A program made the translations under genes and the position numbers. Source: Macrostomum lignano (Eukaryota). Taken from it: DNA of 64,000 bases. The notes under the pieces were generated by a model that saw only the letters and a program-made list of their open reading frames with translations, ran no database searches and had not been told where the DNA came from. Where the stretch lies: NCBI GenBank assembly GCA_002269645.1, contig NIVC01001535.1, forward strand, positions 1-64,000. The letters are read 5' to 3'. Shown one piece after another: positions 14,778 through 46,494 of the stretch; within the stretch, counting starts at the first letter, position 1; each line of letters begins with the position of its first letter.

Positions 14778-14829
14778 GTGAGAAGTGCAGAATAGGTTTA
14801 TGTGTTCTTGATTCCATCTTTCTATGATT

Positions 14830-16104: not shown

Positions 16105-16254
16105 ATCCCAACTCCCGATAAGAATGAAGTCGGCTTCGAAAATCCATCGAAAATGGGGGAAACTGGAGACGTCCGATTTATTCTTTGTTCCAAAAGTGGG
16201 GAAAATTATCATCTGTGTACAAAGATAATCGTTAGCTATAAAGACCAGGAAAGA

Positions 16255-17418: not shown

Positions 17419-18965
17419 CGAAGAGTGACAAATATCTTCACCGTCTTGAAGAGGCTAAGGGTCCGTATAATTCAGTTTTATTGCAAGTAAAATACAAGAA
17501 TTGAGTAAGAAAAGTGACTATAAGCAACCAAATTATAGGTGAAAAATTAGCTCAGCTTAAAGCACTAAATCTGGCTCGTTCAAAGTCACTCTGGCTGAGT
17601 TATTTTTTGCGACTCAGAAAAATATGATACCCTGCAAGGTTATTATGCAATATCTAAGAAATATATGGTATATTCCTTATACACACGCAGGAAACTTTAC
17701 ATTCCCTCCGATTCAGTAGTTGCTTTTGCCTGTGTAATCGTCTTTCGATTTGCTAGAGAGAGAGACGGGGAGAACGCCATGCAATGAGCCTCGGGTCTGG
17801 GTGTGCCTCCCTGCATGTTACGTAATTAACAAGAGACGAAGCGACAGGCAGACAGACAGAAAGAGCCAAAATGAGAGACTTTTTTCGGAGTCTTTCTTTG
17901 GAGACAGATAGTATATTCTCTACTAGAAGAAGAATTTCTCTTTTTTTCTGCTTCGGGTCACCCGCCCGAGACGCTTCAATTTGTCCTTTGGGGAGCACAC
18001 TGGGTCTGCGTTCGAGCAAAACAACCCGACGACCCACCCTTAACGCTCTCGGCTCATTATCGCAGAATTAGTTTGGCACCGCGAGGGGGGGGGCTGTTGT
18101 GGAATCATTTGCGCTAATTATCGTTTCTTTGCGGATCAGTTTAAAGCTCCCTAGGGTATTACGTATTATTACGTTGAATTGGGGGCTAGCCATTAAATCC
18201 GCGAGAATCTATACAGCGTAATCGTGTAATCACTGTTTCACGGGGCTTAAGAGTTGACTACCTCTGGCAAACCAGAGCCCCGGTTGTCTTACAGCAGGTT
18301 CTTAATTGTTTATTTATCTGTCATGATGGTATCTGCGTTGTGCAGTGGTTTATAGTGCCATCAATCATTTATTTGTCAGGTCAACCAGTGGCATGGCCAA
18401 CGGAGGGGTCACGGGGGGGCAGTACTGAAATTTTCAGTTTTAATTTTTACAATTGTCAATGCAATAACGATTAGAAAGTCAGGACCTGTACAACCCTGTG
18501 TGAGCGTGTTGTATGGGTTCGTGCCTGCGCTTGCATGTGCACAGGAGTCAGCGGAATGGTTGTAGGACCATGTCGCCGAAGACTGTCTAGAAACTTGACT
18601 GTAATCTGTACTTTTAAGATGGAAAAAATCTTTTAAAACTACAGCTACTCGAACGGCCACTCGATTAATTAAATCCCCACCCAGAGTCTGGGCTTCAACG
18701 AATTCACCGAGAAGAAGCTGAGGATTGAGTCGAGAGGACATGACCCACTTTAGGGACTTGAGTGGTATTATAGTGCCGAGATATAATCGTAAATTCTCGA
18801 AAACTTAAAAAAAGTCTCCACGCTAAAAATCCAAAAAAGCTTCGAGATCCATCAATTTTATATTGGTTAAGCTACGAGCTATAAATTTCAGTTTTTTATT
18901 TACTCAAGAGAGAAAGGTTTTCTTCGATCAACTGACTCATCTTTGCACCGGTTGAACTTCTGCAG

Positions 18966-19122
18966 GTCAGCTGCAGTCGGGTCTGGGCCTTCCCTATGGC
19001 AACGGTGGCGGCGGTGGCGGAACAACCAACGATCGACGTCTGCTACAACAACAGCAACAACAACAGCAGCTGTTTGACAGCAGGACAGGGGTTTATGACA
19101 CAGCTGGCTCACTCAGACACAG
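18966..19122 (+). CDS. TENM: Teneurin exon 3: intracellular domain (GQLQSGLGLPYGNGGGG...QQQQ...GSLRH)
   Basis: Acceptor TTCTGCAG, donor CAG|GTGAGA, phase 1 in / 2 out, open frame. Confidence 0.7.
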
Positions 19123-19389
19123 GTGAGAGGACAAGTTAAGAGGTGCAGACAGGCTAGAAGTTGGTATAGTTACGGAGCCATGAGAGTTGCATGCGAAACA
19201 GCAAGGTGTTGCCGAGGTGGAAAATTTTCTCTTTCTTCACGTCTTCATTGAAGCCAAAATTACGCAATCATGGGTTTCGAAACCCTTTATGCAGGGGCTG
19301 GCAAACCCTCAACTGCGTGACCAGATGGAGAACCTAGCGCATGACTGCGGGCTAGAGGAGGGGAATTGGAGATGGAATAGAAAATAGGA

Positions 19390-19805
19390 GATGAGAGAAG
19401 GGAGATGAGACGAGAGAAGAGAGAGAGGAGAGAGAAGAGAGAAGAGAGGAGAGAAGAGAGGAGAAGAGAGAAGAGAGGAAAGAGGAGAGAGGAGAGAAGA
19501 GAGGAAACGAGAGAGAAGAGAGGAGAGAAGAGATGAGAGAAGAGAGAAGAAAAGAGCAAAACGAGGAGAGAGGAGAGAAGAAAGGAGAGGAGAGAAGAGA
19601 GAAGAGAGGAGAGAGGAGAGAGGATAGATCGAGGAGAGGAGAGAGAAAAGAGGAGAGGAGAGAAGAGAGAAGAGAGGAGAGAAGAGAAGAAAGGAGAGAG
19701 GAGAGAAGAGAGGAGAGGAAAGAATAGAGAAGAGAGGAGAGAGGAGAGGAGAGAGAAGGAAATGAGAGGAGAAAAGAAGATTATGGAAGAGAGCTGAGAA
19801 GAGAC
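19390..19805. repeat. Polypurine (GA-rich) low-complexity tract
   Basis: GAGAG/GAGAAGAGAG units. Confidence 0.85.
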
Positions 19806-20569
19806 ACAAACCTTGAGCGGGCCGGATTGTTAATGTGAAGTTTCAAAGGACCCGAGGGCCGGATAGAGAGGCTTGGCGTGTCGCCAAGCCGTGGCTTTTC
19901 AAATATATAATACTTGAATCTTGTAATAATAACTTATTCAAACTGCTAGAAGGAGTCGCATTTTAAGCCGCTTCTAAAGGTTAGGAGGCCTTAGCAACAC
20001 GTGGCCACAGAGTCTAAATATGATTGATAGGCATAAATTCTATATAGGTAAGAGCCAAACTCCATGCAGGAAAATATTCTGTCATTTTTCATATTGAATT
20101 CTAACATGCAGTTTATACTACATGCCCCCAACCCCAAAGCATGCCCCCCGCCATTAAGCTTGGCGTGCCAAGGTACACAGGTAGACAATTAGCGAACCAG
20201 TTCGCACACACACGCAGAGACAGGGTCACGGTTGCGTAAACGATTGCGGTTGCGTCATCTGCCAACTGGGGTAGAAGGCAGAGGGTAAAATTTCCAGTAG
20301 CTTAAATGAGAGTTAAAACTTTGTTAGCGGTAAGTTACTTGAAATAATTTAAAATTTTTAGATTTGTTTATTATGTCAAAATCAATTCGATTTAAGGCAG
20401 TTCATTTAGCAAAAAGTTAACCGTATAGTTAACTTTGTGAGGGATGAAATAAATAAACTTTTTCTATCGTAATCAAATATAATTTATGAGTCGTGCGATT
20501 GTAAAAAGTGCAACTGTGGGTTGTGGGATGATAGCTCCCTTGGGGTTGAGGCTGAAAAAAACTGGCGGG

Positions 20570-20960
20570 AGAGACGAGAGAGGGAGAAGAGAGAGGGGAG
20601 AAGAGAAAGGGAGAAGAGAGGGAGACGAGAGAGGGAGAAGAGAGAGGGGAGAAGAGAAAGGGAGAAGAGAGAGAGGGAGAAGAGAGAGGGAGAAGATAGA
20701 GGGGAGAAGAGAGAGGGAGAAGAGAGAGGGAGAAGAGAGAGGGAGAAGAGAGAGGGAGAAGAGAGAGGGAGAAGAGAGAGGGAGAAGAGAGAGGGAGAAG
20801 AGAGAGGGAGAAGAGAGAGGAGAAAAGAGAGGGAAAAATAGAGAGGAGAGAGGGAAGAGGGGAGAAGGCAGAAGAGAGGCGAGAAGAGAGGGGAGAAGAG
20901 AGGGGAGAAGAGAGGGAGAGAACTATAGAGAGTGGATGTCAGAAGAGGAGAGCAGAGAGG
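20570..20960. repeat. Polypurine (GAGAGGGAGAA) low-complexity tract
   Basis: Directly visible. Confidence 0.85.
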
Positions 20961-21335
20961 AGAATTGACAGAAACGGCTCATTAGTATGATAAGGCATTA
21001 GAGTTCTAGCAAAAAAGAGCAATGTAGAAAAATTTAGATGTTCATACATCTAATTAGTAATTAGTGGAATCCTTATGCATTCATCTCTTCATTCGAACGT
21101 CCTATCTTGTTAGCAATGAGATGTTCTTCTCGATTTCATCACACAACTAACAAACAGACTGGAGCTAATTGAATCCCAAGCTTTGTAGAGCTCTAATATT
21201 ATTCTGTTATGGCTGTGTTTGCTTAGTGTAGAGGATTCGAAATCCTATATTGTAGCTTGGGCGTGAGTGCAATGCCCCGGACGTTCTAGATAAATCTCAT
21301 ATTTCTGTGGATCTGTGGAAGCAGTTTGCGAACTC

Positions 21336-21723
<388 letters not shown>

Positions 21724-22526
21724 GTCTAGCCAGAGGGGATAGCTGTGAACGGCCCAAGTTCAATATGCTTCACACAATGACTCATTTGGCATCAAAGATA
21801 TTTTCAAGTGAAACAGGGTCCTGATTTGTTTGACCAAGAGGGATTCGACATCCTCTTTCTGCTTTGTGTCTCCGCTGGTCGATAGTTAAAAAGGAGGAGA
21901 GAATGTGTGGTCATTTGTCTGTTGCTTCAGAAAATAATTTTGCAATACCATGGGGCCAATGGCTTCTATGGGGGCTATGCTGGCAATATTAATAACATTA
22001 TTGCATAACGCTATTAAAGATTGGTTTATAGGCTTGGTCGGCAGTTAGTCATGGTCAAGCTGCATGGCCAAGAAGAATTGTCTGAGGAGGAGTGACTCAC
22101 ACTCACACTCTGAAGCCACTTTCTCCTATCTGCTTCCCGCCTCTCTGCATGTTTCCATAGCTCTGGACTAAAGTTTAAGGGAGAATCGGGTTCCTATGCT
22201 ACACGAAATGCAGCGGTGCTTCACAGTCTTCACAATTGCGCCTTGCTAAAATCAATCGTTAGACCGGATCGAAATCCACTCGTTTAGGGTTTTTTTTTAT
22301 AATTTTCCGTCTCAATACCTTGCCGTAGGTTAGAGATAGTGATCGCAGTGGGGGGTCTCTGTTTGCTTGGATCTCGTGCGATATTGGTTAGGGGCGAATG
22401 AGTGGCTTTGATCATGGTGAGCAAACACTGGGAACGGACTGGGGTTAGTGACACGGATCCGGTGAGGTTCTGCATTTGTTCAAACTGCATTTGGGATTGT
22501 ATCGACAGACTTAATGCAGGTGGTGA

Positions 22527-22660
<134 letters not shown>

Positions 22661-22706
22661 GACACTGAGGCAGACAACAATAATGCAAGCCGCTCCCCTC
22701 TCCCAG

Positions 22707-22963
22707 GTCCAACAAGCTGGCATCCCCATTAATAAACGAGTCCAGTTTGGGCGCAGTCGGCTTCGTTGGCGGCCAGTACCTACCGAGCGACTCAAGCGGC
22801 GGCGGCGGCGGTGGCGGCGGCGTTGGGGTCGGCGGCAACTTCGCCTATTCGAGTTATTCGGCAAGCAAAAAGTCGAACAGGCTGCATTGGTCCACAAGGA
22901 TCATCATCGCCATTCTGCTGCTGTTCATCCTCCTGCTCATTGCCGCCGTGGGATTCTTTGCCG
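22707..22963 (+). CDS. TENM: Teneurin exon 4: end of the intracellular domain and the transmembrane helix (RIIIAILLLFILLLIAAVGFFA)
   Basis: Acceptor CCCCTCTCCCAG, donor CCG|GTGAGT, phase 2/1; single TM preceded by basic KK..R..R, as in type II teneurins. Confidence 0.85.
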
Positions 22964-22969
22964 GTGAGT

Positions 22970-23520
22970 TGTCTCCCCTGTCTCACCCTCTCATGTCTCA
23001 CCCTCCCCTGCCTCACCCTCTCATGTGTCACCCTCTCCTGTCTCACCCTCTCGTGTGTCACCCTCTCCTGTCTCACCCTCTCATGTGTCACCCTCTCCTG
23101 TCTCACCCTCTCATGTGTCACCCTCCCCTGTCTCACCCTCTCATGTCTCACCCTCCCCTGTCTCACCCTCTCATGTGTCACCCTCCCCTGTCTCACCCTC
23201 CCCTGTCTCACCCTCCCCTGTCTCACCCTCCCCTGTCTCACCCTCCCCTGTGTCTCCCTCCCCTGTCTCACTCTCTCATGTCTCACCCTCCCCTGTCTCA
23301 CCCTCCCGTCTCATTCTCCTCTGTCTCACCCTCCCGTCTCACCCTCCTCTGTCTCACCCTCCCGTCTCACCCTCTCCTGTGTCTCCTGTGTCTCCATCTC
23401 CTGTCTCACCTTCCCCTGTGTCTCCCTCCCCTGTCTCACCCTCCCCTGTCTCACCCTCCCCTGTATCATCCTCTTCTGTCTCGCCCTCTTCTGGTCCCAC
23501 CCTTCCCTGTCTCACTTCTC
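22970..23520. repeat. 15-bp minisatellite (TGTCTCACCCTCCCC / CTCATG variants)
   Basis: Begins within ~7 nt of the exon 4 donor. Confidence 0.9.
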
Positions 23521-24224
23521 TGTCCTCATTTTACAAATACAACATTGTTAATCAGATTGTAAGACCATACAAGCCTCACCAAAAATGGACACAAAACATC
23601 GTGTCTGTCTGCCTGTCTGTCTATCTATTCATTCCCTTTGTGTTTACAGAAACCAGCAGTCCACCAACTACCCGTACAATCCCACTAGCACTAGCAACAA
23701 CTTCAAACATCAATATAGATACGAACCTAGCCAAGCCACCGCCCGCAATAATAAAAAGGCTTGGAGTTTAGACACTGTCTCCATAGCAACGATAGCCCAG
23801 CTGCGGGGGAGGGTAATAATAACCTCCGCTCTTCAAGTCCTCGAGTGCAAAATTTTATCGCTTTCAGTTTCCCATTTTTTCCATTATCCACCCCTCTCGA
23901 CCGCGTGGTCAAATAATATTTACACTACCATATGTAGTTCTTTGTTTGAAAGAATTCCAGCTTTTAATGGACCAACGAACCGCAATATTGGCTATGCTTA
24001 TGTGTGGTTGGAGAAAACACCGAAGTTTTTGTATATAGTTTAGCAAGTTGGTTCGGCTGCGGTGTCATTGGTGTTGCTGCAGATCCTAGGCATGCAGCAA
24101 GGAGACTCCACTGCACAGAGTCAGTTCCTTGGCTTTGGCTCTGAACTGCAGGGTTCAGGTTCCGCGTTTTGCTGTTCTCTCTCGGTGTTACCTGACCTTT
24201 GTAAGGCAGTTTCACTGTCTCAGT

Positions 24225-24884
<660 letters not shown>

Positions 24885-25619
24885 TGGCAGTGGTTTGTAG
24901 GCACCGCCGAGCTCCATGTCATGAGGCACATTCCAATACAGACTGTTCAGTGATGGATGGCAGCCAAACAGTGCCGCATGCAACAATAACAACTGCCACT
25001 GCCCAGCTTGCAACACAAGGGCAGGCCGCCAGCACACTCAATGCCTCTCGCACAAGCCTCGCCAGTTTTCTAATTTGCAACCAAACTCCCGCATGATTAA
25101 TTCCCCGAAACGCTCCATCAACTGTCACATTTCTTTCCTTATTCATTTCTTGATCTTTGCCTTTACTATATATCGCCCCCAGCCCTACTAAATCTCTTCC
25201 CTCACCATATGCTGTAGCAAAATCCCAAGACGTCAGTGGATATAATGAGAGTGGAACAATTACTGCTGTTGGTAGTGCAGCGGTGCCCGACTTAATGGCA
25301 AAGCTGGCTTGCAAGATTACGCGATAGGGCTGGCGGATAGGATCCACTGTGTGTGTGTCTATTAGACTCCCTAGCTACTGTTACGCCTAGCTTCTACTCC
25401 AAGCGTTTGTGTGCGCGCGTGTGTCACTCTAAATGTCAGGCTTGACCAAATTTTTAATAATAGTATTCTACCATATTTGTACTTTTATATTCGCCGATTT
25501 TTGTGTACACACATGTACCTTTACGAGGCTGGATAAGACTTCTCTTGTTCAATACCTACATGTACTGATGCGACAGTTTGTGCGCCACCAACGGGCGAAG
25601 TTGAATTGGCGAGCAAAAA

Positions 25620-27078
25620 ACGGCACCCTTAGCATCAAAAAATGGCACCCTGAACATCAAAAATGGCACATCGAACATTAAAAGTGGCATCACTAAAAGT
25701 GTCAAAAGTGGCACTGCTATCTTCAAAAATGGAACCCCTAAGCAGCAAAAGTGGCACCACTAAGCATCAAAATGGAACCCCTAAGCATCAAAATGGAACC
25801 CCTAAGCATCAAAACTGGCACCACTAAACATCAAAATGGCACCACTAAACATCAAAATGGCACCACTAAACATCAAAGTGGCACCCCTAAGCATCAAAGT
25901 GGCACCCCTAAGCATCAAAGTGGCACCCCTAAGCATCAAAACTGGCACCCCTAAGCATCAAAATGGAACCCCTAAGCATCAAAATGGAACCCCTAAGCAT
26001 CAAAACTGGCACCACTAAACATCAAAATGGCACCACTAAACATCAAAGTGGCACCCCTAAGCATCAAAGTGGCACCCCTAAGCATCAAAGTGGCACCCCT
26101 AAGCATCAAAACTGGCACCCCTAAGCATCAAAACTGGCACCCCTAAGCATCAAAACTGGCACCCCTAAGCATCAAAATGGAACCCCTAAGCATCAAAATG
26201 GAACCCCTAAGCATCAAAACTGGCACCACTAAACATCAAAATGGCACCACTAAACATCAAAGTGGAACCCCTAAGCATCAAAGTGGCACCCCTAAGCATC
26301 AAAGTGGCACCCCTAAGCATCAAAACTGGCACCCCTAAGCATCAAAACTGGCACCCCTAAGCATCAAAACTGGCACCCCTAAGCATCAAAACTGGCACCC
26401 CTAAGCATCAAAACTGGCACCCCTAAGCATCAAAACTGGCACCCCTAAGCATCAAAACTGGCACCCCTAAGCATCAAAACTGGCACCCCTAAGCATCAAA
26501 ACTGGCACCCCTAAGCATCAAAACTGGCACCCCTAAGCATCAAAACTGGCACCCCTAAGCATCAAAACTGGCACCCCTAAGCATCAAAACTGGCACCCCT
26601 AAGCATCAAAACTGGCACCCCTAAGCATCAAAACTGGCACCCCTAAGCATCAAAACTGGCACCCCTAAGCATCAAAACTGGCACCCCTAAGCATCAAAAC
26701 TGGCACCCCTAAGCATCAAAACTGGCACCCCTAAGCATCAAAACTGGCACCCCTAAGCATCAAAACTGGCACCCCTAAGCATCAAAACTGGCACCCCTAA
26801 GCATCAAAACTGGCACCCCTAAGCATCAAAACTGGCACCCCTAAGCATCAAAACTGGCACCCCTAAGCATCAAAACTGGCACCCCTAAGCATCAAAACTG
26901 GCACCCCTAAGCATCAAAACTGGCACCCCTAAGCATCAAAACTGGCACCCCTAAGCATCAAAACTGGCACCCCTAAGCATCAAAACTGGCACCCCTAAGC
27001 ATCAAAACTGGCACCCCTAAGCATCAAAACTGGCACCCCTAAGCATCAAAACTGGCACCCCTAAGCATCAAAACTGGC
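25620..27078. repeat. 22-bp minisatellite (AAAACTGGCACCCCTAAGCATC), ~65 copies; degenerate 5' edge, homogeneous 3' half
   Basis: Directly visible. Confidence 0.95.
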
Positions 27079-27136
27079 GTAGGAAGCCACAACATGACGC
27101 ATAAATAATCCCGCCCCGTAATTTCCCTTCCTCAAG

Positions 27137-27438
27137 CCCGCTCAGCCGATCTGGAGAGCCGCATCGAGACCAGCCGGTTGCAGAACCTCACCCTGTTCGG
27201 CCTGTTCGATCCAAACGCCCCACCGCCGAAAGAGATTTCCACCACGGAACCGTTGCAAATCAGCCTGGAACCAACCGGCTATTGGTCTGGAAAACTAACA
27301 ATCTCTGCCACCTGCTACCTGCTGATCAATGTCAGCCTGCCCTACCAGCAGGTGGTCGGGCTCTACCTGAGGCGGAACAGTCTGCCTACGGCTGTCCGAC
27401 ATGACTTCTTTCATCGATTGGTGAATGTGCAGAGCCAG
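27137..27438 (+). CDS. TENM: Teneurin exon 5: N-terminal extracellular Ig-like domain
   Basis: EPTGYWSG...VVGLYLRRNSLPTAVRHDFF resembles the teneurin GvYgRRgLPPthtqyDF motif; acceptor TTCCTCAAG (alternative CTCAG at 27145, same phase); donor CAG|GTGAGC, phase 0. Confidence 0.85.
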
Positions 27439-28146: not shown

Positions 28147-29430
28147 GGGCTTCCTGACACCCAACATGGCTTGTTCCTGATACCCAACTTGTAGCTTCCT
28201 GACACCCAACCTGGCTTGTTCCTGACACCCAACTTGTAGCTTCCTGACACCCAGCCTGGCTTGTTCCTGACACCCAACTTGTAGCTTCCTGACACCCAGC
28301 CTGGCTTGTTCCTGACACCCAACTTGTAGCTTCCTGACACCCAGCCTGGCTTGTTCCTGACACCCAACTTGTAGCTTCCTGACACCCAGCCTGGCTTGTT
28401 CCTGACACCCAACTTGTAGCTTCCTGACACCCAACCTGGCTTGTTCCTGACACCCAACTTGAAACTTCCTGACACCCAACCTGGCTTGTTCCTGACACCC
28501 GACTTAAAGCTTCCTGACACTCAACTTGTAGCTTCCTGACACCCAGCCTGGCTTGTTCCTGACACCCAACTTGAAACTTCCTAACACCCAACCTGGCTTG
28601 TTCCTGACACCTAACTTGTAGCTTCCTGACACCCAACCTGGCTTGTTCCTGACACCCGACTTGTAGCTTCCTGACACCCAACCTGGCTTGTTCCTGACAC
28701 CCAACCTGGCTTGTTCCTGACACCCGACTTGTAGCTTCCTGACACCCAACCTGGCTTGTTCCTGACACCCGACTTGTAGCTTCCTGACACCCAACTTGGC
28801 TTGTTCCTGACACCCAACCTGGCTTGTTCCTGACACCCAACCTGGCTTGTTCCTGACACCCGACTTGTAGCTTCCTGACACCCAACCTGGCTTGTTCCTG
28901 ACACCCAACCTGGCTTGTTCCTGACACCCAACCTGGCTTGTTCCTGACACCCAACCTGGCTTGTTCCTGACACCCAACCTGGCTTGTTCCTGACACCCAA
29001 CCTGGCTTGTTCCTGACACCCAACCTGGCTTGTTCCTGACACCCAACCTGGCTTGTTCCTGACACCCAACCTGGCTTGTTCCTGACACCCAACCTGGCTT
29101 GTTCCTGACACCCAACCTGGCTTGTTCCTGACACCCAACCTGGCTTGTTCCTGACACCCGACTTGTAGCTTCCTGACACCCAACCTGGCTTGTTCCTGAC
29201 ACCCAACCTGGCTTGTTCCTGACACCCGACTTGTAGCTTCCTGACACCCAACCTGGCTTGTTCCTGATACCCGACTTGTAGCTTCCTGACACCCAACCTG
29301 GCTTGTTCCTGACACCCAAACTGGCTTGTTCCTGACATCCAACGTACCTGGCTTGTTCCTGACACCCAACCTGGCTTGTTCCTGACATCCAACCTGGCTT
29401 GTTCCTGACACCCAACCTGGAACTTCTTGA
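28147..29430. repeat. 22/23-bp minisatellite (CCTGACACCCAACCTGGCTTGTT / CCTGACACCCAACTTGTAGCTT) with 45-bp dimers
   Basis: Directly visible; explains the long - strand ORFs at 28058-29442. Confidence 0.93.
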
Positions 29431-30057: not shown

Positions 30058-30815
30058 AGAGAGATCAGAGTGTGTCGGTACTAGATCAGATAGTGTGTCG
30101 GTACTAGATCAGAGAGAGTGTCGGTACTAGATCAGATAGAGTGTCGGTACTAGATCAGATAGAGTGTCGGTACTAGATCAGAGAGTGTCGGTACTAGATC
30201 AGATAGAGTGTCGGTACTAGATCAGATAGAGTGTCGGTACTAGATCAGAGAGTGTCGGTACTAGATCAGATGGAGTGTCGGTACTAGATCAGAGAGTGTG
30301 TGGGCACTATATCATAGTGTTTCGGTACTAGACAGAGAGCGTCGGTACTAGATCATAGAGTGTGTCGGTACTAGATCATAGAGTGTGTCGGTACTAGATC
30401 AGAGAGTGTCGGTACTAGATCATAGAGTGTGTCGGTACTAGATCATAGAGTGTGTCGGTACTAGATCATAGAGTGTGTCGGTACTAGATCAGAGAGTGTC
30501 GGTACTAGATCATAGAGTGTGTCGGTACTAGATCAGAGTGTGTCGGTACTAGACAGAGAGCGTCGGTACTAGATCAGAGAGTGTGTCGGTACTAGATCAG
30601 AGAGTGTCGGTACTAGATCAGAGAGTGTGTCGGTACTAGATCAGAGAGTGTGTCGGTACTAGATCAGAGTGTGTCGGTAATAGACAGAGAGCGTCGGTAC
30701 TAGATCAGAGAGTGTGTCGGTACTAGATCAGAGAGTGTCGGTACTAGATCAGAGAGTGTGTCGGTACTAGATCAGAGAGTGTGTCGGTACTAGACAGAGA
30801 GCGTCGGTACCAGAT
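30058..30815. repeat. 21-23-bp minisatellite (GTGTCGGTACTAGATCAGAGA)
   Basis: Directly visible, ending ~65 nt before the exon 6 acceptor. Confidence 0.93.
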
Positions 30816-30881: not shown

Positions 30882-30999
30882 AAGAAGCCCCACGCGCTGC
30901 CCGTGGTTCACCTGGCCCAACCGGCTGTCTGGTACGTGTCGCTTATCAACGATCAGCGTCATTCAAAAGCGCGCCTGGAAATGCGGGTTACAAAAACAG
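30882..30999 (+). CDS. TENM: Teneurin exon 6: Ig-like domain C-terminal part (KKPHALPVVHLAQPAVWYVSLINDQ...)
   Basis: WYVSLIND corresponds to teneurin WhLAfYND; acceptor CACACCGCAG, donor CAG|GTACGC; phase 0/1. Confidence 0.85.
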
Positions 31000-31236: not shown

Positions 31237-31347
31237 ATTTGGATTACCGACTGACCGACTGCCACGGCGGCTGCAGCAACCGGGGCGCCTGTCAGAGCGG
31301 CGTTTGCCACTGCTTCGCGGGATTCAAAGGGGCGGACTGCTCGCTGG
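31237..31347 (+). CDS. TENM: Teneurin exon 7: EGF1 (DCHGGCSNRGACQSGVCHCFAGFKGADCSL)
   Basis: 6-Cys tenascin-type EGF; acceptor AACGCAG, donor TGG|GTGAGT; phase 1/1. Confidence 0.92.
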
Positions 31348-31730: not shown

Positions 31731-32149
31731 CAGTATGTCAGAAGTTCGACAACCCTGGCTTAGAAAGCAACACACACACAAAACCGAACCCATAAAATTG
31801 CTTCGGAAACTTTTTATACACTATCCTCAAAAAGTCACGACCAGAACACATATTGCCTCCTGAGCCAAGTATTTTATCCCAGAGCGGAATAGCAAATAAA
31901 AACTTGAAGAGATGGTCATCAAGCAATAAGAAGCCCGAGGCTGCATCCGCCAACTCCTCAGCGCCCTCGGCTATTTCGAATTTATTATTGGCCATTTTCG
32001 GGTTTTTCGGCGTATCCGCATCTGCCGCATTCGATTTCGGGAGGAGGCACCGGAGCCACATATGGTGGCTTTTATTTTTGTTACGGCATTTTGGCTGAGC
32101 GGAAAACTCGATGGGAAAGTTTAGCGAATTGAATTTTTAGCGTCTATAT

Positions 32150-32665
<516 letters not shown>

Positions 32666-32717: not shown

Positions 32718-32912
32718 AGGACGCAGTGCAGGTGTGCAGCGGCAATGGCTACTTTGACCGCGGCGTCTGTCGTTGCCACCCCCAGTGGAAGGGAGCGGAC
32801 TGCAGCGTGCCCTGGACAGAGTGCCTGGATCCGCTGTGCTCGGGCAATGGGCGCTGTGTTGCCGGTCAATGTCAGTGCTCGGCTGGCTTCGCTGGCGAGA
32901 AGTGCGAGAATG
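32718..32912 (+). CDS. TENM: Teneurin exon 8: EGF2 and EGF3
   Basis: EDAVQVCSGNGYFDRGVCRCHPQWKGADCSVP-WTECLDPLCSGNGRCVAGQCQCSAGFAGEKCEN; acceptor ATCGCAG, donor ATG|GTGAGC; phase 1/1. Confidence 0.93.
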
Positions 32913-33593: not shown

Positions 33594-34143
<550 letters not shown>

Positions 34144-34639: not shown

Positions 34640-37600
34640 TAGCACTAATCTATAGATCTGGCAATAGCTACATCTATAGATCTGACAGTAGCTTCATCTA
34701 TAGATCTGACAGTAGCTTCATCTGTAGATCTGACAGTAGCTTCATCTATAGATCTGACAGTAGCTTCATCTATAGATCTGGCAGTAGCTTCATCTATAGA
34801 TCTGACAGTAGCTTCATCTATAGATCTGACAGTAGCTTCATCTATAGATCTGACAGTAGCTTCATCTATAGATCTGGCAGTAGCTTCATCTATAGATCTG
34901 ACAGTAGCTTCATCTATAGATCTGACAGTAGCTTCATCTATAGATCTGACAGTAGCTTCATCTATAGATCTGACAGTAGCTTCATCTATAGATCTGACAG
35001 TAGCTTCATCTATAGATCTGACAGTAGCTTCATCTATAGATCTGACAGTAGCTTCATCTATAGATCTGGCAGTAGCTTCATCTATAGATCTGACAGTAGC
35101 TTCATCTATAGATCTGACAGTAGCTTCATCTATAGATCTGACAGTAGCTTCATCTATAGATCTGACAGTAGCTTCATCTATAGATCTGACAGTAGCTTCA
35201 TCTATAGATCTGACAGTAGCTTCATCTATAGATCTGACAGTAGCTTCATCTATAGATCTGACAGTAGCTTCATCTATAGATCTGACAGTAGCTTCATCTA
35301 TAGATCTGACAGTAGCTTCATCTATAGATCTGACAGTAGCTTCATCTATAGATCTGACAGTAGCTTCATCTATAGATCTGACAGTAGCTTCATCTATAGA
35401 TCTGACAGTAGCTTCATCTATAGATCTGACAGTAGCTTCATCTATAGATCTGACAGTAGCTTCATCTATAGATCTGACAGTAGCTTCATCTATAGATCTG
35501 ACAGTAGCTTCATCTATAGATCTGACAGTAGCTTCATCTATAGATCTGACAGTAGCTTCATCTATAGATCTGACAGTAGCTTCATCTATAGATCTGACAG
35601 TAGCTTCATCTATAGATCTGACAGTAGCTTCATCTATAGATCTGACAGTAGCTTCATCTATAGATCTGGCAGCAGCTTCATCTATAGATCTGGCAGTAGC
35701 TTCATCTATAGATCTGACAGTAGCTTCATCTATAGATCTGACAGTAGCTTCATCTATAGATCTGACAGTAGCTTCATCTATAGATCTGACAGTAGCTTCA
35801 TCTATAGATCTGACAGTAGCTTCATCTATAGATCTGACAGTAGCTTCATCTATAGATCTGACAGTAGCTTCATCTATAGATCTGGCAGCAGCTACACCTA
35901 TAGATCTGGCAGTAGCTTCATCTATAGATCTGACAGTAGCTTCATCTATAGATCTGACAGTAGCTTCATCTATAGATCTGACAGCAGCTACATCTATAGA
36001 TCTGACAGTAGCTTCATCTATAGATCTGACAGTAGCTTCATCTATAGATCTGACAGTAGCTTCATCTATAGATCTGACAGTAGCTTCATCTATAGATCTG
36101 ACAGTAGCTTCATCTATAGATCTGACAGTAGCTTCATCTATAGATCTGACAGTAGCTTCATCTATAGATCTGACAGTAGCTTCATCTATAGATCTGACAG
36201 CAGCTACATCTATAGATCTGACAGTAGCTTCATCTATAGATCTGACAGTAGCTTCATCTATAGATCTGACAGTAGCTTCATCTATAGATCTGGCAGCAGC
36301 TACACCTATAGATCTGGCAGTAGCTTCATCTATAGATCTGACAGTAGCTTCATCTATAGATCTGGCAGCAGCTACACCTATAGATCTGGCAGTAGCTTCA
36401 TCTATAGATCTGACAGTAGCTTCATCTATAGATCTGGCAGCAGCTACACCTATAGATCTGGCAGTAGCTTCATCTATAGATCTGACAGTAGCTTCATCTA
36501 TAGATCTGACAGTAGCTTCATCTATAGATCTGACAGTAGCTTCATCTATAGATCTGACAGTAGCTTCATCTATAGATCTGGCAGCAGCTACACCTATAGA
36601 TCTGGCAGTAGCTTCATCTATAGATCTGACAGTAGCTTCATCTATAGATCTGACAGTAGCTTCATCTATAGATCTGACAGTAGCTTCATCTATAGATCTG
36701 ACAGTAGCTTCATCTATAGATCTGACAGTAGCTTCATCTATAGATCTGACAGTAGCTTCATCTATAGATCTGACAGTAGCTTCATCTATAGATCTGGCAG
36801 TAGCTTCATCTATAGATCTGACAGTAGCTTCATCTATAGATCTGACAGTAGCTTCATCTATAGATCTGACAGCAGCTACACCTATAGATCTGACAGTAGC
36901 TTCATCTATAGATCTGACAGTAGCTTCATCTATAGATCTGGCAGTAGCTTCATCTATAGATCTGACAGTAGCTTCATCTATAGATCTGACAGTAGCTTCA
37001 TCTATAGATCTGAGTAGCTTCATCTATAGATCTGGCAGTAGCTTCATCTATAGATCTGACAGTAGCTTCATCTATAGATCTGGCAGCAGCTACACCTATA
37101 GATCTGGCAGTAGCTTCATCTATAGATCTGACAGTAGCTTCATCTATAGATCTGGCAGCAGCTACACCTATAGATCTGGCAGTAGCTTCATCTATAGATC
37201 TGACAGTAGCTTCATCTATAGATCTGGCAGCAGCTACACCTATAGATCTGCAGTAGCTTCATCTATAGATCTGACAGTAGCTTCATCTATAGATCTGGCA
37301 GCAGCTACACCTATAGATCTGGCAGTAGCTTCATCTATAGATCTGACAGTAGCTTCATCTATAGATCTGACAGTAGCTTCATCTATAGATCTGACAGTAG
37401 CTTCATCTATAGATCTGACAGTAGCTTCATCTATAGATCTGGCAGCAGCTACACCTATAGATCTGGCAGTAGCTTCATCTATAGATCTGACAGTAGCTTC
37501 ATCTATAGATCTGACAGTAGCTTCATCTATAGATCTGACAGTAGCTTCATCTATAGATCTGACAGTAGCTTCATCTATAGATCTGACAGTAGCTTCATCT

Positions 37601-40600
37601 ATAGATCTGACAGTAGCTTCATCTATAGATCTGACAGTAGCTTCATCTATAGATCTGGCAGCAGCTTCATCTATAGATCTGACAGTAGCTTCATCTATAG
37701 ATCTGACAGTAGCTTCATCTATAGATCTGGCAGTAGCTTCATCTATAGATCTGACAGTAGCTTCATCTATAGATCTGACAGTAGCTTCATCTATAGATCT
37801 GACAGTAGCTTCATCTATAGATCTGGCAGTAGCTTCATCTATAGATCTGACAGTAGCTTCATCTATAGATCTGACAGTAGCTTCATCTATAGATCTGACA
37901 GTAGCTTCATCTATAGATCTGACAGTAGCTTCATCTGTAGATCTGACAGTAGCTTCATATATAGATCTGGCAGCAGCTACACCTATAGATCAGACAGTAG
38001 CTTCATCTATAGATCTGACAGTAGCTTCATCTATAGATCTGACAGTAGCTTCATCTATAGATCTGACAGTAGCTTCATCTATAGATCTGACAGTAGCTTC
38101 ATCTATAGATCTGACAGCAGCTACATCTATAGATCTGACAGTAGCTTCATCTATAGATCTGGCAGTAGCTTCATCTATAGATCTGACAGTAGCTTCATCT
38201 ATAGATCTGACAGTAGCTTCATCTATAGATCTGACAGTAGCTTCATCTATAGATCTGACAGTAGCTTCATCTATAGATCTGGCAGCAGCTACACCTATAG
38301 ATCTGGCAGTAGCTTCATCTATAGATCTGACAGTAGCTTCATCTATAGATCTGACAGTAGCTTCATCTATAGATCTGACAGTAGCTTCATCTATAGATCT
38401 GACAGTAGCTTCATCTATAGATCTGGCAGCAGCTACACTATAGATCTGGCAGTAGCTTCATCTATAGATCTGACAGTAGCTTCATCTATAGATCTGACAG
38501 TAGCTTCATCTATAGATCTGACAGTAGCTTCATCTATAGATCTGACAGTAGCTTCATCTATAGATCTGGCAGTAGCTTCATCTATAGATCTGACAGTAGC
38601 TTCATCTATAGATCTGACAGTAGCTTCATCTATAGATCTGACAGTAGCTTCATCTATAGATCTGACAGTAGCTTCATCTATAGATCTGACAGTAGCTTCA
38701 TCTATAGATCTGACAGCAGCTACATCTATAGATCTGACAGTAGCTTCATCTATAGATCTGGCAGCAGCTTCATCTATAGATCTGGCAGCAGCTACACCTA
38801 TAGATCTGGCAGCAGCTACACCTATAGGTCTGGCAGTAGCTTCATCTATAGATCTGACAGTAGCTTCATCTATAGATCTGACAGTAGCTTCATCTATAGA
38901 TCTGACAGTAGCTTCATCTATAGATCTGACAGTAGCTTCATCTATAGATCTGACAGTAGCTTCATCTATAGATCTGACAGCTAGCTATAGATCTGACAGT
39001 AGCTTCATCTATAGATCTGACAGTAGCTTCATCTATAGATCTGGCAGCAGCTACACCTATAGATCTGACAGTAGCTTCATCTATAGATCTGACAGTAGCT
39101 TCATCTATAGATCTGACAGTAGCTTCATCTATAGATCTGACAGTAGCTTCATCTATAGATCTGACAGTAGCTTCATCTATAGATCTGGCAGTAGCTTCAT
39201 CTATAGATCTGACAGTAGCTTCATCTATAGATCTGACAGTAGCTTCATCTATAGATCTGACAGTAGCTTCATCTATAGATCTGACAGTAGCTTCATCTAT
39301 AGATCTGACAGTAGCTTCATCTATAGATCTGACAGCAGCTACATCTATAGATCTGACAGTAGCTTCATCTATAGATCTGACAGTAGCTTCATCTATAGAT
39401 CTGGCAGCAGCTACACCTATAGATCTGGCAGTAGCTTCATCTATAGATCTGACAGTAGCTTCATCTATAGATCTGCAGCAGCTTCATCTATAGATCTGAC
39501 AGTAGCTTCATCTATAGATCTGACAGTAGCTTCATCTATAGATCTGACAGTAGCTTCATCTATAGATCTGACAGTAGCTTCATCTATAGATCTGACAGTA
39601 GCTTCATCTATAGATCTGACAGTAGCTTCATCTATAGATCTGGCAGTAGCTTCATCTATAGATCTGGCAGTAGCTTCATCTATAGATCTGACAGTAGCTT
39701 CATCTATAGATCTGACAGTAGCTTCATCTATAGATCTGACAGTAGCTTCATCTATAGATCTGACAGTAGCTTCATCTATAGATCTGGCAGTAGCTTCATC
39801 TATAGATCTGACAGTAGCTTCATCTATAGATCTGACAGTAGCTTCATCTATAGATCTGACAGTAGCTTCATCTATAGATCTGACAGTAGCTTCATCTATA
39901 GATCTGACAGTAGCTTCATCTATAGATCTGACAGTAGCTTCATCTATAGATCTGACAGTAGCTTCATCTATAGATCTGGCAGCAGCTACATCTATAGATC
40001 TGACAGTAGCTTCATCTATAGATCTGACAGTAGCTTCATCTATAGATCTGACAGTAGCTTCATCTATAGATCTGACAGTAGCTTCATCTATAGATCTGAC
40101 AGTAGCTTCATCTATAGATCTGACAGTAGCTTCATCTATAGATCTGACAGTAGCTTCATCTATAGATCTGACAGTAGCTTCATCTATAGATCTGACAGTA
40201 GCTTCATCTATAGATCTGACAGTAGCTTCATCTATAGATCTGACAGTAGCTTCATCTATAGATCTGACAGTAGCTTCATCTATAGATCTGGCAGCAGCTA
40301 CATCTATAGATCTGACAGTAGCTTCATCTATAGATCTGACAGTAGCTTCATCTATAGATCTGACAGTAGCTTCATCTATAGATCTGACAGTAGCTTCATC
40401 TATAGATCTGACAGTAGCTTCATCTATAGATCTGACAGTAGCTTCATCTATAGATCTGACAGTAGCTTCATCTATAGATCTGACAGTAGCTTCATCTATA
40501 GATCTGGCAGTAGCTTCATCTATAGATCTGACAGTAGCTTCATCTATAGATCTGACAGTAGCTTCATCTATAGATCTGACAGCAGCTACACCTATAGATC

Positions 40601-43600
40601 TGACAGTAGCTTCATCTATAGATCTGACAGTAGCTTCATCTATAGATCTGGCAGTAGCTTCATCTATAGATCTGACAGTAGCTTCATCTATAGATCTGAC
40701 AGTAGCTTCATCTATAGATCTGACAGTAGCTTCATCTATAGATCTGGCAGTAGCTTCATCTATAGATCTGACAGTAGCTTCATCTATAGATCTGGCAGCA
40801 GCTACACCTATAGATCTGGCAGTAGCTTCATCTATAGATCTGACAGTAGCTTCATCTATAGATCTGGCAGCAGCTACACCTATAGATCTGGCAGTAGCTT
40901 CATCTATAGATCTGACAGTAGCTTCATCTATAGATCTGGCAGCAGCTACACCTATAGATCTGGCAGTAGCTTCATCTATAGATCTGACAGTAGCTTCATC
41001 TATAGATCTGGCAGCAGCTACACCTATAGATCTGGCAGTAGCTTCATCTATAGATCTGACAGTAGCTTCATCTATAGATCTGACAGTAGCTTCATCTATA
41101 GATCTGACAGTAGCTTCATCTATAGATCTGACAGTAGCTTCATCTATAGATCTGGCAGCAGCTACACCTATAGATCTGGCAGTAGCTTCATCTATAGATC
41201 TGACAGTAGCTTCATCTATAGATCTGACAGTAGCTTCATCTATAGATCTGACAGTAGCTTCATCTATAGATCTGACAGTAGCTTCATCTATAGATCTGAC
41301 AGTAGCTTCATCTATAGATCTGACAGTAGCTTCATCTATAGATCTGACAGTAGCTTCATCTATAGATCTGGCAGTAGCTTCATCTATAGATCTGACAGTA
41401 GCTTCATCTATAGATCTGACAGTAGCTTCATCTATAGATCTGGCAGCTTCATCTGACAGTAGCTTCATCTATAGATCTGACAGTAGCTTCATCTATAGAT
41501 CTGACAGTAGCTTCATCTATAGATCTGACAGTAGCTTCATCTATAGATCTGACAGTAGCTTCATCTATAGATCTGGCAGCAGCTTCATCTATAGATCTGA
41601 CAGTAGCTTCATCTATAGATCTGACAGTAGCTTCATCTATAGATCTGACAGTAGCTTCATCTATAGATCTGACAGTAGCTTCATCTATAGATCTGACAGT
41701 AGCTTCATCTATAGATCTGACAGCAGCTACATCTATAGATCTGACAGTAGCTTCATCTATAGATCTGACAGTAGCTTCATCTATAGATCTGACAGTAGCT
41801 TCATCTATAGATCTGACAGTAGCTTCATCTATAGATCTGACAGTAGCTTCATCTATAGATCTGACAGTAGCTTCATCTATAGATCTGGCAGCAGCTTCAT
41901 CTATAGATCTGGCAGTAGCTTCATCTATAGATCTGACAGTAGCTTCATCTATAGATCTGACAGTAGCTTCATCTATAGATCTGACAGTAGCTTCATCTAT
42001 AGATCTGACAGTAGCTTCATCTATAGATCTGGCAGTAGCTTCATCTATAGATCTGGCAGTAGCTTCATCTATAGATCTGACAGTAGCTTCATCTATAGAT
42101 CTGACAGTAGCTTCATCTATAGATCTGACAGTAGCTTCATCTATAGATCTGACAGTAGCTTCATCTATAGATCTGGCAGTAGCTTCATCTATAGATCTGA
42201 CAGTAGCTTCATCTATAGATCTGACAGTAGCTTCATCTATAGATCTGACAGTAGCTTCATCTATAGATCTGACAGTAGCTTCATCTATAGATCTGACAGT
42301 AGCTTCATCTATAGATCTGACAGTAGCTTCATCTATAGATCTGACAGTAGCTTCATCTATAGATCTGGCAGCAGCTTCATCTATAGATCTGGCAGCAGCT
42401 TCATCTATAGATCTGACAGTAGCTTCATCTATAGATCTGACAGTAGCTTCATCTATAGATCTGACAGTAGCTTCATCTATAGATCTGACAGTAGCTTCAT
42501 CTATAGATCTGACAGTAGCTTCATCTATAGATCTGACAGTAGCTTCATCTATAGATCTGACAGTAGCTTCATCTATAGATCTGACAGTAGCTTCATCTAT
42601 AGATCTGACAGTAGCTTCATCTATAGATCTGGCAGTAGCTTCATCTATAGATCTGACAGTAGCTTCATCTATAGATCTGACAGTAGCTTCATCTATAGAT
42701 CTGACAGTAGCTTCATCTATAGATCTGACAGTAGCTTCATCTATAGATCTGACAGTAGCTTCATCTATAGATCTGACAGTAGCTTCATCTATAGATCTGA
42801 CAGTAGCTTCATCTATAGATCTGACAGTAGCTTCATCTATAGATCTGACAGTAGCTTCATCTATAGATCTGACAGTAGCTTCATCTATAGATCTGACAGT
42901 AGCTTCATCTATAGATCTGACAGTAGCTTCATCTATAGATCTGACAGTAGCTTCATCTATAGATCTGACAGTAGCTTCATCTATAGATCTGGCAGTAGCT
43001 TCATCTATAGATCTGGCAGTAGCTTCATCTATAGATCTGACAGCAGCTACACCTATAGATCTGGCAGCAGCTACACCTATAGATCTGGCAGTAGCTTCAT
43101 CTATAGATCTGACAGTAGCTTCATCTATAGATCTGACAGTAGCTTCATCTATAGATCTGACAGTAGCTTCATCTATAGATCTGACAGTAGCTTCATCTAT
43201 AGATCTGGCAGCAGCTTCATCTATAGATCTGGCAGTAGCTTCATCTATAGATCTGACAGTAGCTTCATCTATAGATCTGACAGTAGCTTCATCTATAGAT
43301 CTGACAGTAGCTTCATCTATAGATCTGACAGTAGCTTCATCTATAGATCTGACAGTAGCTTCATCTATAGATCTGACAGTAGCTTCATCTATAGATCTGA
43401 CAGTAGCTACATCTATAGATCTGACAGTAGCTTCATCTATAGATCTGACAGTAGCTTCATCTATAGATCTGACAGTAGCTTCATCTATAGATCTGACAGT
43501 AGCTTCATCTATAGATCTGACAGTAGCTTCATCTATAGATCTGACAGTAGCTTCATCTATAGATCTGACAGTAGCTTCATCTATAGATCTGACAGTAGCT

Positions 43601-46494
43601 TCATCTATAGATCTGACAGTAGCTACATCTATAGATCTGGCAGTAGCTTCATCTATAGATCTGACAGTAGCTTCATCTATAGATCTGACAGTAGCTTCAT
43701 CTATAGATCTGACAGTAGCTTCATCTATAGATCTGACAGTAGCTTCATCTATAGATCTGACAGTAGCTTCATCTATAGATCTGGCAGTAGCTTCATCTAT
43801 AGATCTGACAGTAGCTTCATCTATAGATCTGACAGTAGCTTCATCTATAGATCTGACAGTAGCTTCATCTATAGATCTGACAGTAGCTTCATCTATAGAT
43901 CTGACAGTAGCTTCATCTATAGATCTGACAGTAGCTTCATCTATAGATCTGACAGTAGCTTCATCTATAGATCTGACAGTAGCTTCATCTATAGATCTGG
44001 CAGCAGCTACACTATAGATCTGGCAGTAGCTTCATCTATAGATCTGACAGTAGCTTCATCTATAGATCTGACAGTAGCTTCATCTATAGATCTGACAGTA
44101 GCTTCATCTATAGATCTGACAGTAGCTTCATCTATAGATCTGACAGTAGCTTCATCTATAGATCTGACAGTAGCTTCATCTATAGATCTGACAGTAGCTT
44201 CATCTATAGATCTGACAGTAGCTTCATCTATAGATCTGACAGTAGCTTCATCTATAGATCTGACAGTAGCTTCATCTATAGATCTGACAGTAGCTTCATC
44301 TATAGATCTGACAGTAGCTTCATCTATAGATCTGACAGTAGCTTCATCTATAGATCTGACAGTAGCTTCATCTATAGATCTGACAGTAGCTTCATCTATA
44401 GATCTGACAGTAGCTTCATCTATAGATCTGACAGTAGCTTCATCTATAGATCTGACAGTAGCTTCATCTATAGATCTGACAGTAGCTTCATCTATAGATC
44501 TGACAGTAGCTTCATCTATAGATCTGACAGTAGCTTCATCTATAGATCTGACAGTAGCTTCATCTATAGATCTGACAGTAGCTTCATCTATAGATCTGAC
44601 AGTAGCTTCATCTATAGATCTGACAGTAGCTTCATCTATAGATCTGACAGTAGCTACATCTATAGATCTGACAGTAGCTTCATCTATAGATCTGACAGTA
44701 GCTTCATCTATAGATCTGACAGTAGCTTCATCTATAGATCTGACAGTAGCTTCATCTATAGATCTGACAGTAGCTTCATCTATAGATCTGGCAGTAGCTT
44801 CATCTATAGATCTGACAGTAGCTTCATCTATAGATCTGACAGTAGCTTCATCTATAGATCTGACAGTAGCTTCATCTATAGATCTGACAGTAGCTTCATC
44901 TGTAGATCTGGCAGTAGCTTCATCTATAGATCTGGCAGCAGCTACACCTATAGATCTGACAGTAGCTTCATCTCTAGATCTGACAGTAGCTTCATCTATA
45001 GATCTGACAGTAGCTTCATCTATAGATCTGACAGTAGCTTCATCTATAGATCTGACAGTAGCTTCATCTATAGATCTGACAGTAGCTTCATCTATAGATC
45101 TGACAGTAGCTTCATCTATAGATCTGACAGTAGCTTCATCTATAGATCTGGCAGTAGCTTCATCTATAGATCTGACAGTAGCTTCATCTATAGATCTGAC
45201 AGTAGCTTCATCTATAGATCTGACAGTAGCTTCATCTATAGATCTGGCAGCAGCTACACCTATAGATCAGACAGTAGCTTCATCTATAGATCTGACAGTA
45301 GCTTCATCTATAGATCTGACAGTAGCTTCATCTATAGATCTGGCAGCAGCTTCATCTATAGATCTGACAGTAGCTTCATCTATAGATCTGACAGTAGCTT
45401 CATCTATAGATCTGACAGTAGCTTCATCTATAGATCTGACAGTAGCTTCATCTATAGATCTGACAGTAGCTTCATCTATAGATCTGACAGTAGCTTCATC
45501 TATAGATCTGACAGTAGCTTCATCTATAGATCTGGCAGCAGCTACACTATAGATCTGACAGTAGCTTCATCTATAGATCTGACAGTAGCTTCATCTATAG
45601 ATCTGACAGTAGCTTCATCTATAGATCTGACAGTAGCTTCATCTATAGATCTGACAGTAGCTTCATCTATAGATCTGACAGTAGCTTCATCTATAGATCT
45701 GACAGTAGCTTCATCTATAGATCTGGCAGTAGCTTCATCTATAGATCTGACAGTAGCTTCATCTATAGATCTGACAGTAGCTTCATCTATAGATCTGACA
45801 GTAGCTTCATCTATAGATCTGACAGTAGCTTCATCTATAGATCTGACAGTAGCTTCATCTATAGATCTGACAGTAGCTTCATCTATAGATCTGACAGTAG
45901 CTTCATCTATAGATCTGACAGTAGCTTCATCTATAGATCTGACAGTAGCTTCATCTATAGATCTGACAGTAGCTTCATCTATAGATCTGACAGTAGCTTC
46001 ATCTATAGATCTGACAGTAGCTTCATCTATAGATCTGACAGTAGCTTCATCTATAGATCTGACAGTAGCTTCATCTATAGATCTGACAGTAGCTTCATCT
46101 ATAGATCTGACAGTAGCTTCATCTATAGATCTGACAGTAGCTTCATCTATAGATCTGGCAGTAGCTTCATCTATAGATCTGACAGTAGCTTCATCTATAG
46201 ATCTGACAGTAGCTTCATCTATAGATCTGGCAGTAGCTTCATCTATAGATCTGACAGTAGCTTCATCTATAGATCTGACAGTAGCTTCATCTATAGATCT
46301 GACAGTAGCTTCATCTATAGATCTGACAGTAGCTTCATCTATAGATCTGACAGTAGCTTCATCTATAGATCTGACAGCAGCTACATCTATAGATCTGACA
46401 GTAGCTTCATCTATAGATCTGGCAGCAGCTACACCTATAGATCTGGCAGCAGCTACACCTATAGATCTGGCAGCAGCTACACCTATAGGTCTGG
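34640..46494. repeat. 24-bp satellite (ATCTATAGATCTGACAGTAGCTTC), ~11.9 kb, ~490 copies, in teneurin intron 8
   Basis: Directly visible; unit length confirmed by the 8-aa periodicity of the track ORFs (SDSSFIYR / RSIDEATV). Confidence 0.98.

Follow-up and report, generated by a model that had tools for sequence, protein, structure and literature searches.

Apparent loss of the unpaired EGF2 cysteine in a teneurin of Macrostomum lignano and in other flatworm teneurins

In vertebrates, the free cysteines of the teneurin repeats EGF2 and EGF5 form the two inter-chain bonds of a constitutive cis-dimer (PMC11058771, PMC9058538), and this two-disulfide lock has been stated for 'all teneurins' (PMC11058771). 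The SAXS data of Meijer et al. were unable to separate parallel (2-2', 5-5') from antiparallel (2-5') links (PMC9058538). The unpaired cysteine of EGF2 is not a universal feature of teneurins (PMC3278476). According to Tucker et al. (2012), the sea urchin protein carries the substitution in EGF2 only, EGF5 of Caenorhabditis elegans is incomplete, and Monosiga has no such repeat; the teneurin of Schistosoma mansoni, described as having 'four EGF repeats, all with a full complement of cysteines' and no free EGF cysteines, 'probably fails to dimerize' (PMC3278476). The arrangement was later reported as 'not found in lophotrochozoa' (Tucker, 2018; PMC6297184). A full-text search of the papers covered retrieved none pairing teneurin with Macrostomum.

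The window, i.e., the whole stretch of 64,000 nucleotides of Macrostomum lignano DNA analyzed here (Platyhelminthes, Rhabditophora, Macrostomorpha), contains a large part of a gene that the first-pass annotation had identified as a teneurin. This identity is borne out by the Pfam profiles EGF_TEN (215.8 bits, the cut-off being 65, with 232 of the 234 profile positions covered), GBD_Tenm3 (E-value 2.4e-11), TTR_TEN1-4 (3.1e-15), FN-plug_TEN1-4 (3.2e-11), and TEN_NHL (5.3e-54). The latter three matches are all above the Pfam cut-offs and are colinear, in + strand order, with the tblastn matches obtained with teneurins of Opisthorchis, insects, and vertebrates as queries. In a phmmer search of PDB with the spliced EGF1-3 peptide, the top matches were teneurin-2 and teneurin-3 (E-value about 1e-39). 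The domain order, comprising the pre-EGF domain, eight EGF repeats, Cys-rich domain, TTR, FN-plug, NHL, and YD shell, is the same as in vertebrate teneurins 1-4 (PDB 9g42 for teneurin-2; 8r50 and 8r54 for teneurin-3). The reconstructed features of the gene are as follows.

22900-22959, + strand: candidate transmembrane helix IIIAILLLFILLLIAAVGFF, preceded by RLHW (hydropathy scan of the + strand, 12000-27200)
27137-27438, + strand: exon 5, first part of the pre-EGF galactose-binding-like (Ig-like) domain (identity to P0219, GBD_Tenm3, tblastn)
30882-30999, + strand: exon 6 KKPHALPVVHLAQPAVWYVSLINDQRHSKARLEMRVTKT, end of the pre-EGF domain (identical to P0219)
31237-31347, + strand: exon 7, EGF1 with 6 Cys (tblastn, PDB alignment; P0219 stops at the same donor)
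32718-32912, + strand: exon 8, EGF2 with 4 Cys and EGF3 with 6 Cys (PDB alignment, 12-teneurin alignment, junction in P0235)
51085-51303, + strand: exon 9, EGF4 with 6 Cys and EGF5 with 5 Cys (reading of Cys codons, flatworm comparison)
52398-52580, + strand: exon 10, EGF6 and EGF7 with 6 Cys each (tblastn, splicing model)
55539-55697, + strand: exon 11, EGF8 with 6 Cys and the start of the Cys-rich domain (tblastn, splicing model)
56011-56215, + strand: exon 12, Cys-rich calcium-binding domain (tblastn; consensus match jointly with exon 11)
56613-57350, + strand: exon with the TTR-like domain and the first part of FN-plug (Pfam, tblastn)
57708-57854, + strand: exon with the end of FN-plug (tblastn, weak Pfam FN-plug match)
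58893-60146, + strand: exon with the NHL beta-propeller (Pfam TEN_NHL, tblastn)
60367-61071, + strand: open frame with the start of the YD shell (PDB phmmer matches to YD shells of teneurin and teneurin-like proteins; weak Pfam RHS_repeat and TEN_YD-shell)

The eight teneurin-type EGF repeats are encoded by exons 7-11 and contain 6, 4, 6, 6, 5, 6, 6, and 6 cysteines, respectively. AG/GT borders are present at all six consecutive EGF and Cys-rich exons (31237-31347 to 56011-56215), and each of the five EGF exons has phase 1-1 and a length that is a multiple of three. Such exons, with phase 1-1 and lengths divisible by three, are the usual pattern of EGF modules. The WY.SL.ND motif in exon 6 is common to all the teneurins compared. 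The Cys-rich domain that follows EGF8 in the spliced exons 11-12 fits, at every position, the published teneurin consensus ExxCx(D/N)xxDx(D/E)xDxxxDCxxx(D/E)CCxxxxCxxxxxC (PMC3278476). The gene runs past base 64000, and its C-terminal half lies beyond the window; of the C-terminal domains of teneurins (YD shell, ABD, and Tox-GHH), the window includes the first part of the YD shell, with weak matches. The 235-aa YD-shell frame (60367-61071), used as a protein query, gave no match at E<=1e-10, its sequence having diverged too far for a word-index search.

Upstream of the EGF repeats, the 20-residue hydrophobic segment at 22900-22959 is a candidate for the single transmembrane helix that, in the type II topology of teneurins, separates an N-terminal cytoplasmic domain from the ectodomain. 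The basis is its hydropathy and the donor of its exon, which at 22963 is in phase 1 and thus compatible with the start of exon 5. No match to the teneurin intracellular domain (Pfam Ten_N) was found in the upstream frames 13393-13935, 14462-14824, 14482-14754, and 23552-24040. The first of these (+ strand) is a long open frame upstream of the candidate transmembrane exon that encodes poly-Gln, an acidic segment, and a run of 13 prolines; no Pfam or homology match was found for it, and it might be a part of the intracellular domain. Proline-rich SH3-binding motifs are known in teneurins. In addition, the last ~40 nt of exon 10, encoding the end of EGF7, and the donor CTCTGG/GTGAGT are tandemly repeated at 52539-52841 (TRF period 83, 100% matches), so that the donor motif occurs seven times (52575, 52607, 52658, 52690, 52741, 52792, and 52824). 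Use of any later donor copy in this array leads to a frame shift or a stop. The array is located at the EGF7/EGF8 boundary; vertebrate teneurins have the splice site A at this boundary.

Satellite, minisatellite, and microsatellite arrays fill the introns. An 11.8 kb satellite at 34648-46493, with a 24-bp unit ATCTATAGATCTGACAGTAGCTTC in about 494 copies (96% matches), takes up most of the 18 kb intron that separates exon 8 (EGF2-3) from exon 9 (EGF4-5). At 9785-9922 (+ strand), within the first 12 kb of the window, which are richer in AT, a short reading frame LRWPSQSPDMNPIEHV has a match to the Pfam DDE_3 transposase domain (E-value 3.5e-06; 27.4 bits, just below the cut-off of 28.6) and is probably a decayed fragment of a Tc1/mariner-type transposon. 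The other repeats are mini- and microsatellite arrays.

24224-24884, 32149-32665, and 33594-34142: (TGTC)n arrays
16258-17417, 25617-27078, 28151-29420, and 30067-30815: arrays of 22-23 bp units
63035-63999: array of 42 bp units

Public protein models of M. lignano teneurins (P0001, P0015, P0018, P0212, P0219, and P0235) are fragmentary, and two of them, both retrieved by a flatworm profile search, match the locus. P0219 (UniParc UPI0007A2C9F5) is 100% identical to the spliced exons 5-6-7, and its last residue coincides with the exon 7 donor. P0235 (A0A1I8FN35), a model of this or a twin locus, is nearly identical and is a frame-hopping model that changes its reading frame inside exons 5, 6, 7, and 8; these frame hops suggest either that the older assembly contains indel errors or that the copy is a duplicate in decay. 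The two matches place the window in M. lignano or an extremely close species.

The departure from the vertebrate scheme is found at the junction of exons 7 and 8. The 3' end of exon 7 reads GGG GCG GAC TGC TCG CTG G (last base 31347), i.e., GADCSL and the first base of a Glu codon, and is followed by a gtgagt donor. Exon 8 starts at 32718 with AG GAC GCA GTG CAG GTG TGC AGC GGC AAT GGC TAC TTT, the intron sequence before its acceptor being ccccaatcgcag / ctcctgcccgcctctcccccaatcgcag. The two exons join in phase 1 to give the spliced peptide GADCSL-E-DAVQVCSGNGYFDRGVCRCHPQWKGADC (in summary form, GADCSL followed by EDAVQVCSGNGYFDRGVCRCHPQWKGADC), and this junction is a prediction from the splice signals and their phase, from homology, and from gene models that are themselves predicted. 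The position of the first cysteine (C1) of EGF2 is occupied by Ala (GCA, 32723-32725) and that of the third (C3) by Phe (TTT, 32753-32755), which leaves the Cys codons at 32735, 32768, 32774, and 32801. Residues 6-101 of the spliced peptide align without gaps on EGF1-3 of the PDB teneurin-2 and teneurin-3 sequences (phmmer). In this alignment with the vertebrate teneurins, Ala takes the column of the initial Cys of 'CPVLC', and Phe that of Tyr. Thus, the codons and the PDB alignment uphold the first-pass reading of EGF2 as a four-cysteine repeat with Ala at C1 and Phe at C3, and the exact consensus spacing claimed for it holds in both the gapless PDB alignment and the 12-teneurin alignment. 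An aromatic residue at EGF2 C3 is shared with vertebrate teneurins; however, the hallmark of five cysteines with C1 unpaired is absent, as the vertebrate C1 (Cys549 of mouse Ten3, PMC11058771) is Ala here and the repeat has four cysteines instead of five. With both C1 and C3 replaced in this way, EGF2 therefore has no spare thiol. Canonical EGF repeats pair C1-C3, C2-C4, and C5-C6. By analogy, the M. lignano EGF2 would keep the C2-C4 and C5-C6 bridges.

Some properties of the data could favor an artefactual origin of the missing cysteine: the junction 31347/32718 is modelled from DNA and predicted proteins; intron 7 is rich in repeats, and its many AG...GT pairs create Cys-containing pseudo-micro-exons; and the older model P0235 is full of frameshifts. 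Nevertheless, P0235 joins exons 7 and 8 at the same junction, in a shifted frame, and its residues R-T-Q set bases 32724-32725 to C and A, so that the codon 32723-32725 has to be NCA, which encodes Ala, Ser, Pro, or Thr but in no case Cys. GCA differs from TGC and TGT by three substitutions, one at every position, and the possibility raised by the first-pass annotation that GCA is an assembly error is thus not upheld. Nor was any credible micro-exon or alternative acceptor, the other source of a cysteine that it had suggested, found in intron 7 or in the exon extensions. The in-frame stretch upstream of the exon 8 acceptor (14 residues, with a stop before 32675) contains no Cys, and readthrough past the exon 7 donor meets a stop after two codons. 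A regex scan of 27000-56500 for a second or alternative EGF2-like exon found only the known exons. Within intron 7, 36 AG...GT candidates for micro-exons with an in-frame Cys were rejected, as all of them fall in CAGTCTGTCA-type repeats and break the spacing.

The first-pass annotation had proposed an alignment of EGF2 across animals, and the comparison places the loss of C1, among the teneurins read, in flatworms only. The residues at the EGF2 C1 position of the flatworm teneurins are as follows.

Macrostomorpha, M. lignano window gene: Ala
Macrostomorpha, M. lignano paralogue P0001: Glu
Macrostomorpha, M. lignano paralogue P0018: Val
Trematoda, Opisthorchis felineus, O. viverrini, and Clonorchis sinensis: Val
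Trematoda, Trichobilharzia regenti cluster: Leu
Cestoda, Rodentolepis nana: Asn
Cestoda, Hydatigera taeniaeformis and Hymenolepis weldensis: Asp
Monogenea, Cichlidogyrus casuarinus: Lys

The distance between C6 of EGF1 and C2 of EGF2 is eight residues in every flatworm sequence, as in vertebrates, and any micro-exon would disrupt it. In a motif-anchored count over all fetched proteins, EGF2 C1 was absent from 8 of 8 flatworm teneurins and present in 45 of 45 others, which include sequences of vertebrates, amphioxus, a hemichordate, insects, a tick, nematodes, and a mollusc; the annelid Helobdella, read directly and outside this count, also keeps the cysteine. The C1 loss is thus not peculiar to the window gene and is common to every flatworm teneurin read. 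Since the mollusc and annelid sequences keep the cysteine, it is a flatworm trait and not a lophotrochozoan one, which refines the earlier generalization (PMC6297184). The replacement at C1 varies, whereas the C3 position of EGF2 stays Y, F, or L in flatworms; such free variation at C1 would be as expected of a site without remaining function. The flukes O. felineus (TGZ59579.1) and C. sinensis (GAA54969.1) resemble the window gene in having lost EGF2 C1 with an aromatic residue at C3. EGF2 of flukes is thus not missing and persists as a four-cysteine relic, which the published fluke description does not mention (PMC3278476).

In contrast to EGF2, EGF5 retains its odd cysteine. C1 is encoded by TGC at 51195-51197, the C3 position by CTG (Leu) at 51240-51242, and the repeat has five cysteines; the teneurin hallmark of a replaced C3 with an unpaired C1 is therefore present, with Leu rather than Tyr or Phe. 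The first-pass description of five cysteines, Leu at C3, and a QPRPLLP insertion proved correct, the C1-C2 loop consisting of eight residues (EQPRPLLP) as compared with 3-4 elsewhere. Vertebrate teneurins share with the window gene an EGF1-3 that aligns without gaps and an odd EGF5 cysteine; however, their C1-C2 loop of EGF5 has three residues. In all three M. lignano paralogues, EGF5 has five cysteines, its C1-C2 loop is enlarged, and the residue at C3 is Leu, Ile, or Phe. In three cestodes, EGF5 has four cysteines, without C1 and with Tyr or Phe at C3, and in Opisthorchis and Echinostoma a Cys-free linker takes its place, so that the trematodes read have no odd cysteine where the window gene keeps one. 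Among the sequences read, the odd EGF cysteines thus number two in other bilaterians, one in Macrostomum, and none in neodermatans. As predicted from its codons, C1 of EGF5 is the sole odd cysteine left in the EGF stalk of the window gene. A separate observation concerns the pre-EGF domain, where the codon TGC at 27313-27315 (TISATCYLL, exon 5) encodes a lineage-specific cysteine, the second odd one in the stalk. It is not conserved: paralogue P0018 has Val at the aligned position, and other species have Arg, Ala, Gly, Lys, or Ile.

Other teneurins with one altered dimerization repeat differ in the repeat affected. According to its published description, the teneurin of Strongylocentrotus purpuratus resembles the window gene in having one substituted EGF repeat and hence one potential covalent link (PMC3278476); however, the remaining site is EGF2 in a protein with six EGF repeats, whereas it is EGF5 in the window gene with all eight. 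In C. elegans TEN-1L, one dimerization repeat is likewise altered, but this is EGF5, which lacks the C2-C3 segment (PMC3278476), rather than EGF2; the nematodes Plectus, Onchocerca, and Panagrolaimus keep EGF2 C1.

We consider that these observations are probably explained by a C1 loss in the flatworm lineage that left a four-cysteine EGF2 and, for any covalent dimer, a single EGF5-EGF5' link. The ancestral bilaterian EGF2 would have carried an aromatic residue in place of C3 and a free C1 available for an inter-chain disulfide; flatworms would then have lost the partnerless C1 as well, leaving a repeat with the C2-C4 and C5-C6 bridges and without a free thiol. As the odd cysteine of EGF5 is the only one in the EGF repeats, covalent cis-dimerization, if it occurs, would proceed via a single EGF5-EGF5' disulfide. 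Judging by cysteine parity within the stalk, the dimer is probably held, as the first-pass annotation had proposed, by one disulfide instead of two; the remaining EGF5 cysteine would presumably still make an inter-chain bond, and any effect on dimer geometry is likewise presumptive.

A rather unlikely alternative is that no covalent dimer forms, because the odd EGF5 cysteine is buried, capped, or paired in-chain with the pre-EGF cysteine, in which case Macrostomum teneurins would be monomers or non-covalent dimers, as proposed for flukes. Neodermatan flatworms do lack any odd EGF cysteine, and monomers have been suggested there (PMC3278476, PMC6297184); moreover, the window gene has a second odd cysteine at 27313-27315, and its EGF5 combines an enlarged C1-C2 loop with a non-aromatic Leu at C3. 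However, C1 of EGF5 is kept in all three M. lignano paralogues despite differing surrounding residues, and the pre-EGF cysteine is absent from the other paralogues and all other species and therefore is not a general partner of EGF5 C1. The same pre-EGF cysteine might instead substitute for EGF2 as a second inter-chain bridge, so that two links were kept. The presence of two odd cysteines in the stalk and the position of the pre-EGF domain, which adjoins EGF1-2, speak for such a bridge, but we regard it as very improbable, given that this cysteine occurs in the window paralogue only, is replaced by other residues elsewhere, and shows no sign of exposure. Finally, an artefact due to an assembly error at GCA, a missed micro-exon, or a wrong acceptor is scarcely credible, as the cysteine is missing, at the same eight-residue spacing, from at least 10 further flatworm sequences, which represent two M. 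lignano paralogues and eight other species; these comparative data are the strongest evidence that the predicted C1 loss is an artefact of neither assembly nor splicing.

Flatworm teneurins may represent a stepwise dismantling of covalent cis-dimerization, EGF2 first and EGF5 later, a view for and against which we hold the balance to be even. The free EGF2 cysteine would have been lost in the common ancestor of the sampled flatworm groups, whereas the free EGF5 cysteine would have been retained in the free-living Macrostomum, in its three paralogues, and then lost in cestodes (four-cysteine EGF5) and trematodes (EGF5 gone). The retention of EGF5 C1 without its EGF2 partner argues for homotypic pairing (EGF5-EGF5'). 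If true, such self-pairing would be natural evidence for a parallel arrangement of the stalks, and the M. lignano protein would be a natural single-link teneurin for probing the role of the second link.

The absence of free EGF cysteines from fluke teneurins has been reported before (PMC3278476, PMC6297184). What appears to be new is the phylum-wide four-cysteine EGF2 together with a one-link intermediate in Macrostomum, whose single link we infer. Earlier exceptions to the two-link scheme were scattered single species; here, a whole phylum would have dropped the EGF2 link and kept the repeat, and a free-living flatworm would retain the EGF5 link later lost by its parasitic relatives. For the field, the consequence is incremental, a modest lineage-wide variation on a known property without a change of concept. 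The natural series of two, one, and zero links nevertheless bears on whether covalent dimerization matters for teneurin function and on whether the links are homotypic. M. lignano is amenable to transformation and RNAi in the laboratory, which would make the question of the covalent link testable in this organism.
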